Positions 19,070 through 31,200 are shown, counted from the stretch's first letter. The stretch: 64,000 bases of DNA from Octopus sinensis (GCF_006345805.1 NC_043021.1:18538001-18602000); one strand, 5' to 3'. The notes: generated by a model from the letters alone, not told the origin. Numbers and translations are program-made.

Positions 19070-19203
19070 ATGTCTCACGTAGAGAATGGATGGTTCCATG
19101 AAATACACAACTACATGGACCTGGGAATCAGTTTGGCAGTTGAAATTGAAGAAGTTCTCTTCCAGGGCAAGTCTGATTATCAAGACATCCAGGTATTCCG
19201 AAG
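19070..19203 (+). CDS. SRM: SRM-like exon 1 ([45 protein letters not shown])
   Basis: ATG at 19070, donor AAG|GTGAGT, phase 2; GWFxE and YQDI motifs. Confidence 0.92.
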
Positions 19204-22200
19204 GTGAGTCACTTCCTCTTTCTGTTCTCTCTCTCTCTCTCTCCCCATATATATATATATATATATACATGCTAGCATGGAAAGCGGACGTTAAATGATG
19301 ATGATGATGATGATATATATTTGTGTAGTTGAATGAATTATCCTAGTATGGATAATTCGGTTAACCGATACCCGGGTAGCAAATTCACATCAGAAAACAC
19401 GGTTGAAGCTACATGCCAAGGGCAGAGATCACGTGCTTCGTGTGGAAATTTGTGTGTTTTTTTTTACTAAAAATAAATGAAAGAATGGAGTCGAACGACG
19501 ATTTAACAAAATTCCTTTATTCTCGACATATGTTTCAAAGACTGCATATTCTTAATTCTGAAGGAATTCCTTCAGAATTAAGAATATGCAGTCTTCGAAA
19601 CATATGTCGAGAATAAAGGAATTTTGTTAAATCGTCGTTCGACTCCATTCTTTCATTTATTTATATATATATATATAAATCATCATCATTGTTTTAGCTC
19701 ACATATACATGCATACATATATATATACACACACACACAGTTTAGTTTTAAGATACATGCTGCAGGTGCTCTGTGATGCATGGTCAGTGATGTTTCTGGG
19801 ATCTCAGGATTTCAGGTCTTTCGCCACCAGACCCCTTTGCCCAGTAGATCCAGCTGGGGTTGTTCAACTCTGATCTTGTGTCCCTTTCCTGATCAAAAGT
19901 CTGAATACAATGACAGAATTTAGTAATTTTCTAAATGTGTTTAATTGTATAACTAGAAACTAATTAATTAATGTGATTTATGTAAATTATGATACATGAT
20001 TAATGAAATAATTTATAATTTTGTAAATTTATGGATTTTTTGTGTTAAAAATAATGGTTCAAATTTTTCCTGGTCATGGCAGAAGACTCCCGTTCAGGAA
20101 AGCATGAATGCCTCTAAATATGTGTTGGTGCTTTGTCCCAAATCCTTGTTCTTAATCCTTTGGTTCTTAATCAGACAGACTGCATGCAACAACCCCTCAA
20201 ACTGATCGTGTGATTCATTGTCTCTCTGTTGTATCTCCATTTACATCTTACTCTGCAGTACAAGCACAGTTGCCAGCCACATTGAAATGCAGTATTAAGG
20301 CAATAATGGGATTTTAAGACATCCAACAAAAAAAAAAACAACAATTACCCATTCAGGGTCATTTGCATCTTTGCAGGGTTCATAAAAACTGGATTAAGGA
20401 CCGGTTTTAAAGTCATGTTCAGTAGTGAAACGTTAAGCAATTTTTTTATCTAACGCTCCTTTTATTTGTGGTCCATCAAACTCGGGGTACAGTCCTAGGT
20501 ATACACTAGCAAGTGCCCAACAATGCCCATCCCTTATGAAGGAGGAATTTCTGCAAACAGAAAAGTTGATATTTCTGTAATGGCTTCAAAGCATGACTAT
20601 GGAATCTAAAAGTGGATCTGTATATTCCATAGAACTTACTTATAGGATCATATAATGTATTCCAACCAGATGGTGCATGCTACCATTCTGGAGCAATTTA
20701 CGGAAGACTGTCTTTGAAACTAATGTACAAAGAACGCTGTTGTGTTTATTATATATTGGTTCCAAATTTTGGCACAAGGCCTGCAATTTTGAGAGAGAGC
20801 GTTAAGTTGATTACATCAACTCCAGTGCATAACTGGTACATATTTTATCAACCCTGAAAGCAACGAAAGGCAAAACCGACCTTGGCAGAATTTGAACTCA
20901 GAACATAAAGACAGACAAAATGCTGCAAAGTATTTCGCCCAACATTCTTATGATTCTGCCAGTTTGCCATCGTCGTATGATATTATGTTGTGTCGGTCTG
21001 CATTGTTGCTGCTGTGGCCTTCATGCATTGTGGCCATGCTTCTGTCCCAACTTCTCTTTCTCTCTGCTGCTGCTTCTTGAATCAGCCTCCATCTTGTCTC
21101 CTTTCTGTGATTATTTTCTGTTTTCTTCCAGCAAGAAATTTGGCAACATGTTAGTGTTGGATGGCCTCATCCAGTGCACCGAGTGGGATGAATTCGCCTA
21201 TCAAGAGATGATCGCTAATCTCCCTCTTTACAGCCACCCTAATCCAAAAAAGGTAATCTCTATTTCTAATTCGTAGACATGGAACACTTTCACCTCACTT
21301 CCTACAAAAGTATGATGATGATGATGATGGTGATGGTGGTGGCGGTGATGATGATGATGATGATGGTGATAGTGATGGTGGTGGCGGTGATGATGATGAT
21401 GATGATGGTGATAGTGATGGTGGTGGCGGTGATGATGATGATGATGATGGTGATGGTAGTGGTGGTGGTGGTGATGATGATGGTGGTGGTGGTGGTGGTG
21501 ATGATGATGATGATGATGATGATGGTGGCAGTGATGATGATGATGATGATCCTTTCTACTATAAGCAAAAAGCCTGAAATTTTGGAGGTGTACTAAAAAT
21601 TCTGCCAGCTCAATGCCTTACCTGTAATGACAATAATTATATATATATATATATATATATATATATATATATATACAGGTGTCGGTGTGTGGTAAGAAGT
21701 TTCCTTCCCAACCACATGATTCTGGGTTCAATCCCACTGCATGGCACTTTGGGCAAGTATTCTCTATTATAGCCTCAGGCTGACCAAAGCTTTGTGAGTG
21801 GATTCTGTAGACGGAAACTGAGAGAAGCCCATTGTACATATATGTGTGTGTGTGTATCCTTGTGTTTGTCCTCCACTGTTGTTTGTCAACCAGTGTTGGT
21901 GTGTTTACATCCCTGTAACTTAGCGGTTCAACAAAAAAGCCGACAGAATACGTATCAGGCTTCAACAAATAGATGCTGGTGGGGGGGGGGGGGGGGGGGG
22001 GGGGTGGCAGTGAGTCAATTCATTCAACTAAGATTCTTTGAGGTGGTGCTCCAGCATGGCCACAGTCTAATGACTGAAACAAGTGAAAGATAAAAAGACA
22101 CACACACACACACACACACACACACACACACACACACACAGGTCGTTTGTATTCTGTATAAGTTTGATCAATTAATATATAATTATCTTTACATAATTAT

Positions 22201-28200: not shown

Positions 28201-31200
28201 TTCAAAGTGATATGGCCGTAAATGGCCATTGATGTTTGTATTCAGATTTCTTGAGTTTTGAAAAAAATATCTCATTAAAATAAAACCTAACCTTATTTTT
28301 CTGGTGGTGCCATCTGGTGGATCTAATAACAATTATCCTTGTATTCTAATTAATGTCTTTGTTAATGAATGATTGACACGAGACATAAGTAACCCTGTAG
28401 CATTTAAACTGGTCATATGCTGCCCTAATATTCCACCTGTTTCGTCATAGTGGCCAGATCCAGCCTCTTACACCTACCCTGCAATGTCATCCTAAGAATC
28501 CTTTCGAATGCTAAACGGTTAAAGGTGTATCGTAGTTGTATGACGCTCTAGAAGTTATGCCTACCTTTGTGTTGTAGTGGAAATGGTACACCTCCTCCCA
28601 CTGGACAAGTGGTATGAACCAGCCACTATAAAGTCAACCAGTATAGGGAGTCATGAGTCACAGTCAAGGTAGACAGTTCAAATTCGGTGTCTTGCAGAGC
28701 TATCAGCAATGGTTTTGCTATGGAATGGTGAAACTATTTTTTCATTTTCTGATAAAGCAATGTTTTGGACTTACAACACTTTTGCATAAAAGCAATGATA
28801 TATATATCATCGTTTAACATCTGCCTTCATATATATACGCGATGGGTGCCTTTTTCGTTTTTGTCTCTCAAATCCACTCACAATGCTTTGGTCAGCCAGA
28901 GGCCACAATAGGAAACATTGGCCCAAGGTGCCAAGCAGTTTGTGTTTTCTTGGTCACAGACTTCCCAGGCAACAGATCTCCATTTCCCTTGTTCTACTCA
29001 AATACTGAATTTTCATCTTGCACCTCTGTAAAGCTTTCATCTTCCTGTATTTTTAATCAGACTCTCTTTACTCTTTTACTTGTATCAGTCATTTGACTGC
29101 GGCCATGCTGGAGCACCGCCTTTAGTCGAGCAAATCGACCCTGGAACTTATTCTTTGTAAGCCCAGTACTTATTCTATCAGTCTCTTTTGCCGAACCGCT
29201 AAGTGACGGGGACGTAAACACACCATCATCAGTTGTCAAGCAATGCTAGGGGGACAAACACAGACACACAAACATACATATATATATACATATATACGAC
29301 AGGCTTCTTTCAGTTTCCGTCTACCAAATCCACTCACAAGGCTTTGGTCGGCCCGGGGCTATAGCAGAAGACACCTGCCCAAGATGCCACGCAGTGGGAC
29401 TGAACCCGGAACATGGCTTTTTTTTTATATCTCAGTTCTTTGAAAATGTAAAATGTTATTTTTTGTATTTGAAAGTAAAGTGTGAGCTAGAGTACTTTTC
29501 TCTTAACAGCAACAAAAGTGTTGTTTGTTTTGTCTTAGTTTTTGGATTCAGGCATCTCATGTCTTGAAAAGGAGTCTTGTTTGATTCATTCTTGCATAGA
29601 AAAAGGGAACTGTCAAAGCAATGGGAGTGATGATGATGATGATGATGACAATGTGTGAGTGGGTATGTGACTTCTAACCTCAGGTATGTTCTGTGACACA
29701 CCTGTAATCACTTCTTATCTCTATTACAGGTGAGAGTCAGTGGTTTGATCATCTCCTGCTGAAAGACATCATAACATTTGCCAAGGAACTCTTCCCAAGG
29801 GTCGCCTATGCTTATGCCCCAATGCCAACCTATTTAGGGGGACAAATTGGTTTCATTCTCTGCAGCAAGAACCAGGTACGGTTTTTTGTCCATTTTTTTC
29901 TTGGTTTTTATTGGATTTTAGTTTGTTAAAGCCTCTTGTTTGTTTCCTGATGAGTTGATGCTGTTTACAAGATGATGATGATGATGATGATGATGAAGAT
30001 ATAATCATCAGTTTGACGTCCACTTTTCTATGTTTGCATGGGTCCAGATTTTTTATGGCGAAAGGCCTTTCCTGTTGTCAACCCTCACCTGTTTCCACCC
30101 AACGTAATATTCCCCCACGCCCCAGGGCCAAACATGTTTTTTCACAGAAGACTTACTTGTATGATGATGATGATGCTCATTTACAACCGTCATGTGATGT
30201 TAAGACAAGGCTACACACAAACATATGTATGATGGGCTTCTTTCAGTTTCCTTCCACTTAAGTTGTTGCACAGTGGGACTGAACTTGAGGCCACAGGCTT
30301 TGGAACTGCATGTGTGTATGCATACATGTCTGTGTGTGTGTGAAGGCACGTGGCTTAATGGTTAGGGTATTTGGCTCACGACCTTACGATCATGAGTTCG
30401 ATTCCCAGTGGGACGTTGTGTCCTCGAGCAAGGGCTTTCTCCGTCCAGGTTGCAGATCCATGGAATAAGCTGCCGGACGAAATAGTGAAGATGCTGACGA
30501 CCGCCTGGTTCAAAGTCTCTCTTGACCAGAAATGGCCTGAACTCTTTGCATGAACACCCTCCCTGTACATAACTCCATGTCCCCCTACATGGCCTTGCTT
30601 TTTGCTTTTTGAGCCAAAAAATTAACTTAACATTTCATGTTGCTCCATTCCACTCAGCTGGCATAATGAGTGCCCCAGCATGGCCACAGTCCAAAACCTG
30701 AAGCCAATAAAAAAAACATCTAAAAGAATGCATGTCAATTACTGAAGCACCAATAAATGTGCAACACACTACTGCACTTTATTACTGCATATGTGCAAAT
30801 AATATTGCGACAACTTGTGATGTGCAGCAAAGTTGTCATTGAAACCCTTTTGCCTTCAGGTTAAATCTTATTTATTCCCAGGGTTTTGAATGGAACATGC
30901 ATTACCTCATGGCTTTGAGACTTAATAAGGTGATTGTTTATTTTTAGGACGACATTGTAGGGTAGGTGTGAGAGGCCTGATCTGGCCAGTTTGAATATAA
31001 ACCAAATGGAATATTAGGGCGATACGGCAGGTTTAAGCAGAACTTTTAGAATTGGTCCAGACTGCTAATAATGCCATTTTCTTCTCATAAGTCTTTCAAA
31101 TGACAAGAGTTCCTAAAAGTTGATATTACAATGATTCCTCCCCAAAGACTGACCAAAACCAAATATTGGAGACTTTCTGCCAAGAGACTTATATTTCTAA

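Follow-up and report, generated by a model that had tools for sequence, protein, structure and literature searches.

A constrained octopod spermidine synthase paralog with an altered amine-acceptor pocket

Spermidine synthase (SRM) is among the most conserved metabolic enzymes of eukaryotes, and Trp28 is a textbook-level invariant of the eukaryotic form. A stretch of 64,000 nucleotides of Octopus sinensis (GCF_006345805.1, NC_043021.1:18538001-18602000), hereafter the window, carries a gene of this family, here termed SRM-B, whose product lacks this tryptophan. Which amine does such an enzyme accept? A constrained animal paralog without Trp28 amounts to a natural test of the control that the acceptor pocket exerts over polyamine chain length. 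What seems new here is that octopods, a lineage seemingly without the canonical enzyme, carry just such a paralog and that its acceptor pocket is altered in a unique way.

Retained catalytic residues and an altered amine pocket

The SRM-B product matches the PABS catalytic domain (Pfam PF01564, 4.6e-71) and the N-terminal β-strand tetramerisation domain (PF17284, 2e-21), scores 344.6 bits against the NCBIfam speE equivalog TIGR00417 (cut-off 249.55) and aligns with the human SRM structures 2o05/3rw9 at a HMMER E-value of 6.6e-104. Its AlphaFold model has a mean predicted local distance difference test (pLDDT) score of 93.6, and its fit to the putrescine-bound human structure (2o06) gives a template modeling (TM) score of 0.96 and a root-mean-square deviation of 1.1 Å. 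The lowest-confidence stretches are the altered hairpin, residues 11-20 (pLDDT 77), and the gatekeeping loop, residues 161-170 (pLDDT 71).

An earlier note on this DNA had reported that the residues for catalysis and for binding decarboxylated S-adenosylmethionine (dcAdoMet) are retained. The HMMER alignment bears this out: Q38/Q49, Q59/Q70, Y68/Y79, D93/D104, E113/E124, D162/D173, D165/D176 (SRM-B/human numbering) and the Tyr of PTY are all present. The GGGDGG motif with its Asp, Gln49, Gln70, Tyr79, Gln80 and Glu124 occur in all four SRM-B orthologs, and D162, D165 and Y230 (human Asp173, Asp176 and Tyr241) are kept in Octopus and in the ortholog from Logan, with Y241F in Argonauta. In the human enzyme it is Asp173, aided by Tyr79, Tyr241 and the Ser174 carbonyl, that takes the proton from the attacking amine, and Asp176 anchors the far amine (PMC12812037, PMC10146546). 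A working dcAdoMet-dependent aminopropyltransferase is the best explanation for these retained residues and for the modeled fold.

It is improbable that SRM-B is catalytically dead, either as a subunit with a regulatory or scaffolding role (for example in a heterodimer with the second octopus gene, paralog A, through the N-terminal dimerisation domain) or as a decaying gene. The most altered part of the protein, the N-terminal hairpin, does lie in the dimerisation domain, and the Argonauta ortholog has lost the catalytic-site Tyr (Y241F) and carries Q245E and I246C. However, four species have an unbroken reading frame, the ratio of nonsynonymous to synonymous rates (dN/dS) between two Octopus species is about 0.01, Octopus retains all catalytic and dcAdoMet residues, the model is confidently SRM-like, and the Logan ortholog (P0181) is transcribed and spliced, many RNA-seq assemblies having its coding sequence spliced and in one piece.

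We consider a switch of cofactor or chemistry, to a methyl or carboxyaminopropyl transferase dependent on S-adenosylmethionine (SAM) and resembling plant putrescine N-methyltransferase (PMT), to be very improbable. Small changes surround the adenosine site (I125L, D155E, T172N), but they are conservative. The change from spermidine synthase to PMT needs D103I, Q79T and V106T, the Asp repelling the SAM carboxylate (PMC3725402). SRM-B keeps D104, the residue that binds the dcAdoMet amine and excludes SAM, together with Q80 and V107, so that the argument against a PMT-type switch first made from D104 alone stands on all three residues.

The amine pocket is altered at several points. In the HMMER alignments to human SRM, ETCSLW-PGQ is replaced by a 10-residue segment with one extra residue (seen against 2o05/3rw9), TDSSDPMGPAESLF by another 14-residue segment, and PTYPSG by PTYLGG, each as previously noted. 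The further reported change of GDG to EEG is seen in this alignment too, VGDG becoming IEEG; its D155E occurs in Octopus and Argonauta only, a third ortholog keeping the Asp. At the hairpin SRM-B reads YMDLGI in place of the Trp28-containing LWPGQ of the eukaryotic putrescine-specific enzyme (EC 2.5.1.16), and the most economical alignment derives this turn from a cuttlefish-like LWDGY through W28M, P29D, an added Leu and Q31I, a Tyr-to-Ile change when counted from LWDGY. The gatekeeping loop, DCTDPVGPGLGLY, departs from the canonical D-S-S-D-P-x-G-P-A-E/S-S/G-L-F. Both elements bear on the acceptor: Trp28 of human SRM shuts the cavity and blocks longer amines (PMC12812037), which agrees with the pocket-closing role given to it in the earlier note, and the gatekeeping loop gives most of the hydrogen bonds to putrescine, a mutation of the loop proline shifting specificity (PMC10146546).

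These positions scarcely vary elsewhere. Trp28 is kept in 170/170 other homologs covering the site, SRM-B alone lacking it, and is 100% conserved in a larger set of 205 homologs; A181, changed in SRM-B, is invariant in 174 to 205 others. Of 98 sites with a conservation of 90% or more, SRM-B departs from the consensus at 16 and each cephalopod A group at 6; five of the 16 sites changed in SRM-B (W28, I125, D155, T172 and A181) are 100% conserved elsewhere. The pocket changes are common to all four orthologs. The substitution pattern is real and not due to chance.

Origin, constraint and candidate acceptors

All seven intron positions and phases of SRM-B are the same in Mastomys SRM, in a chiton type-1 SRM and in octopod paralog A. 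SRM-B was therefore inherited vertically and duplicated at the DNA level, as the intron pattern had already led the earlier note to argue for a metazoan origin. Horizontal transfer and retrocopying are ruled out by the introns shared with mammal and chiton together with the molluscan phylogeny.

Molluscs generally carry two SRM lineages. The canonical type 1 is marked by LWPGQ, WLH and PTYPSG, and the mollusc-specific type 2 by W-x-G-Y/F, by WLD or WFD, and by an altered residue after PTY. Type 2 is found in chitons through to bivalves and gastropods (for example P0060, P0012, P0164, P0174, P0091 and P0111), with Q31 replaced by Tyr or Phe, H213D, loss of P242 and, in most members, S243G, with Ser instead in two; a DAPDP loop occurs in several type-2 sequences.

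SRM-B is indeed a paralog and not the only SRM of its genome. Paralog A is on a different chromosome (O. bimaculoides P0182, O. sinensis P0183, Argonauta P0045) and has cuttlefish orthologs (P0188, P0189). This second gene is not of the WPGQ type: it reads LWSGY and belongs to type 2. Paralog A keeps Trp28, a loop of the form DS[TP]DPVGPAEGLF, I125, D155 and T172. The octopod A genes (L001, L008, L006) also show changes at near-invariant sites beside the catalytic Tyr that cuttlefish A does not have, namely P239A in PTY, F248L and T72S.

Both octopod genes bear type-2 signatures. In neighbor-joining bootstraps the sister group of SRM-B is purely type 2 in 95-99% of replicates and grouping with cephalopod type 1 is seen in 0%; the placement is unchanged when the pocket segments are removed. 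A diverged octopod ortholog of the type-1 gene is thus excluded by the bootstraps and the signatures. Our comparisons indicate that SRM-B arose by DNA-level duplication within the mollusc type-2 lineage, where it has so far been seen in octopods only. In the distance tree, A and SRM-B part before the octopod and decapod forms of A do. Octopod A and SRM-B alone have six rare states in common (E17, L68, N85, Y89, T175 and H194), which suggest a later split or gene conversion.

Canonical type-1 SRM is present in cuttlefish and squid (P0224, P0198, P0120, P0117, P0104). Three lists of the best 120 homologs contained type 1 from other molluscs but none from octopods. One candidate, P0090, was rejected as bivalve-like, being 83% identical to scallop sequences. 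Judging from the protein databases, octopods may have lost the canonical gene, and this apparent loss poses the question of where octopus spermidine comes from and whether unusual polyamines occur there.

Between O. bimaculoides and O. sinensis, SRM-B shows 1 nonsynonymous and 22 synonymous differences (the dN/dS of about 0.01 given above), and paralog A shows 4 and 19 (dN/dS 0.05). SRM-B is under strong purifying selection. Between Octopus and Argonauta the synonymous sites of SRM-B are saturated (pS about 0.8), so that the comparison is by nonsynonymous divergence (dN) alone, which is 0.149 for SRM-B and 0.078 for paralog A. Tajima relative-rate tests of SRM-B against octopod A with eight outgroups gave counts such as 41 and 39 unique changes, none of the differences being significant, and lend no support to the notion that SRM-B is simply a fast-evolving copy. 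The Argonauta hians copy (L005), in addition to its Y241F, Q245E and I246C, has a GC content at third codon positions of 0.66, compared with 0.45-0.48 in the other orthologs, and may have diverged further in function.

We tentatively favor, at a little under an even chance, an altered or broadened amine acceptor in SRM-B, with paralog A as the putrescine enzyme. Replacement of the Trp by Met-Asp-Leu, a Gly-rich loop minus Glu182 and a Leu after Tyr241 would together enlarge and loosen the pocket. On this view the amine preferred by SRM-B, or at least taken by it, would be one other than putrescine, for instance a longer di- or triamine, and the more conservative paralog A, with its Trp and normal loop, would supply spermidine. 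Of the neofunctionalised paralog proposed at the outset, the paralog status holds, and the new acceptor is a reasonable hypothesis drawn from the sequence and not a result. If true, it would be an independent animal case of spermidine synthase neofunctionalisation, new beside the fungal and plant cases.

Several points weigh against a changed acceptor. The clustering of changes in the pocket is marginal, 10 of the 16 changed sites falling in active-site segments that had been fixed beforehand from the literature (Fisher p 0.05), and SRM-B is no faster overall than octopod A, the distinction being where the changes fell. Asp176, the anchor of the distal amine of putrescine, is kept. The statement that enzymes without Trp28 take longer amines proves too general: E. 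coli SpeE and B. subtilis SpeE, annotated spermidine synthases, lack the hairpin Trp-Pro and have Phe-Gly there. E. coli SpeE moreover shares residues with SRM-B, and a pocket of this style is therefore compatible with putrescine. Substrates are not predictable from known motifs in this family (PMC11107197). Finally, octopod A has pocket oddities of its own, which would leave it open which copy is the housekeeping enzyme, more so if type 1 is lost.

Almost as likely, on our assessment, is that SRM-B still converts putrescine to spermidine in the ordinary way, as a tissue- or stage-specific isozyme or as the main octopod enzyme. Its hairpin and loop would have drifted, or converged to a bacterial-style closure in which Tyr15, Met16 or Leu18, for example, takes the place of Trp. 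The bacterial enzymes without Trp-Pro fit this view, E. coli SpeE also having DCTDP, GPG and xGG like SRM-B, as do the retention of every catalytic and putrescine-anchoring residue and a speE equivalog score well over the cut-off. If octopods have no type 1, at least one type-2 copy must therefore make spermidine, and a 'spermidine synthase' transcript, copy not specified, is reported to be regulated in the oviducal gland of Octopus maya (PMC8976471). Against an ordinary isozyme, every other eukaryote-type enzyme sampled has Trp28, paralog A included; change at five invariant sites followed by such strong constraint is unlike neutral drift in a redundant isozyme; and paralog A is the better fit for the putrescine role. 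If SRM-B just makes spermidine, a eukaryotic scaffold can do without the Trp wall.

A bolder form of the changed-acceptor reading, which we regard as rather unlikely, is that octopods dropped the canonical SRM and run on two type-2 copies, with SRM-B and its opened pocket making a polyamine not otherwise made by animal SRM-type enzymes. Candidate products would be cadaverine, diaminopropane or agmatine with an added aminopropyl group, a tetraamine derived from spermidine, or a biogenic amine that has been aminopropylated. In functional surveys, agmatine is a further acceptor of many spermidine synthases (PMC11107197). A literature search on cephalopod polyamines found nothing useful.

The gene and its surroundings

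SRM-B occupies 19070-36744 on the + strand as eight coding exons, delimited by tblastn with human SRM and by reading of the splice sites (Table 1), and every intron is GT-AG. The interval proposed earlier, 19070-29875, does hold exons 1-6 but misses two further exons beyond 29875. Exon 1 is equally long in the orthologs of Argonauta and O. vulgaris. The product, of 289 residues, is P0179 (XP_029651089 in O. sinensis), whose annotation in O. sinensis and O. vulgaris is already 'spermidine synthase', and differs from the O. bimaculoides protein P0001 at a single residue.

Table 1. Coding exons and pocket motifs of SRM-B, in window coordinates
Feature	Position	Strand	Content
Coding exon 1	19070-19203	+	From Met1 to the second nucleotide of codon 45; N-terminal β-hairpin; GT donor 19204
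Remodeled hairpin turn Y15-M-D-L-G-I20	19112-19129	+	In place of L-W28-P-G-Q; one residue longer, no Trp
Coding exon 2	21132-21252	+	Q59, Y68, Q69 (human Q70, Y79, Q80); R74 to Trp
Coding exon 3	22967-23059	+	GGGDGG at 22979-22996 (D93 = human D104); E113 (human E124); I125L
Coding exon 4	24758-24911	+	I-E-E-G at ~24836-24844 (human G154E, D155E)
N-D-C-T-D-P-V-G in exon 4	24890-24911	+	Catalytic D162 and anchoring D165 kept; T172N, S174C, S175T
Coding exon 5	26141-26224	+	Rest of gatekeeping loop, P-G-L-G-L-Y, at 26141-26160: A181G, E182L, S183G, F185Y
Coding exon 6	29730-29875	+	Q195, E197 (human Q206, E208); W-F-D (H213D, type-2 signature)
P-T-Y-L-G-G in exon 6	29825-29842	+	
Coding exon 7	31242-31364	+	C-terminal helices
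Coding exon 8	36730-36744	+	R-L-G-L-stop; gene end = O. sinensis annotation end (L011 27675 = window 36744)

The window matches CM016883.1, a chromosome record of O. sinensis, at 100% identity. VCDQ01005061.1 (L012), an unplaced scaffold of the same species, is 98.9% identical to window 14946-46702 and is probably a haplotig, not a further paralog; this haplotig copy of the locus explains why several RefSeq accessions exist for one SRM-B protein. An assembly gap of 100 N lies at 4437-4536.

The introns hold tandem repeats: intron 2 has a 42-bp ATG/GTG-rich repeat of 5.6 copies (21312-21548), intron 3 an (AT)n array with about 207 copies (23804-24213) and the last intron a TGTA/TG-type microsatellite of about 3 kb (32303-35268), which accounts for the strong GC skew at 32-34 kb. 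Two interspersed families occur on both strands, with several copies within SRM-B introns: one of about 180 bp and roughly 25 copies (e.g. 27250-27427, 25129-25293, 572-745, 14197-14375), the other of about 380 bp and roughly 12 copies (e.g. 26677-27060, 29068-29412, 46286-46714, 57378-57761). Both are probably SINE-like elements.

Short open reading frames at 2086-2451 (+), 35270-35633 (-) and 47221-47601 (+) have, in a 12-residue motif, a look that we take to be that of mariner/Tc1 transposase remnants; these transposon-like frames of the window had no Pfam matches. Downstream, gene calls on the O. sinensis and O. vulgaris loci place a NatB_MDM20 gene (NAA25-like, about 970 aa) on the - strand, from about 39443 to beyond 46744.

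Comparison with known aminopropyltransferases

SRM-B is 53-55% identical over its whole length to human and other eukaryotic SRM (PDB 2o05-2o0l, 3rw9, 9q41). It shares with the human enzyme the three-domain fold (TM 0.96) and the same dcAdoMet and catalytic residues, and with mammalian (Mastomys) SRM the seven intron positions. Unlike human SRM, it lacks Trp28-Pro29, has one more hairpin residue and carries T172N, S174C, S175T, A181G, E182L, P242L and I125L, with D155E in Octopus and Argonauta SRM-B.

Among molluscs it resembles type 2 (Sepia pharaonis CAE1252133 and the second copies of Haliotis, Solemya and Liolophura), with which it has in common H213D, Y59F and the loss of P242. V37I is shared with non-cephalopod type 2 only, whereas cephalopod A keeps Val, and S243G is shared with most type-2 members, whereas octopod A has Cys. 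Paralog A of O. sinensis (XP_029648650) has an exon structure identical to that of SRM-B, but the two proteins are 54.5% identical within the same species.

E. coli SpeE (3o4f) resembles SRM-B in S174C, S175T, A181G, Y189F, DCTDP, GPG, NPGG and PTYxGG. The bacterial hairpins, QFGQ in E. coli and NFGI in B. subtilis (1iy9; both sequences checked against these PDB entries), are shorter and carry Phe-Gly, whereas that of SRM-B is longer and carries Met-Asp-Leu-Gly. Bacterial SpeE is also the more distant match (E 2.6e-58 versus 6.6e-104 for human). We interpret the resemblance as convergent, because the introns and phylogeny of SRM-B are metazoan.

Thermospermine synthase (ACL5/TspmSyn) has Glu for Asp in GGG(D/E)G (PMC11107197). 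SRM-B, by contrast, has the Asp, and it matches Medicago TspmSyn (6bq2) at 5.3e-38, against 6.6e-104 for human SRM. Animal spermine synthase (SMS) is unrelated and of bacterial origin, with an N-terminal domain resembling S-adenosylmethionine decarboxylase fused to a bacterial-type aminopropyltransferase domain (PMC12803844); SRM-B, at 289 residues, has the SRM architecture only, and its match to human SMS (3c6k) is 1e-15. SRM-B belongs to neither of these two types.

The spermine synthases of fungi and land plants evolved from spermidine synthase duplicates (PMC12803844). They have no sequence signature linking SRM-B to them, but follow the same pattern, in which a spermidine synthase is duplicated and its acceptor pocket changed while the dcAdoMet chemistry is kept, and they are the nearest evolutionary precedents for the octopod gene.

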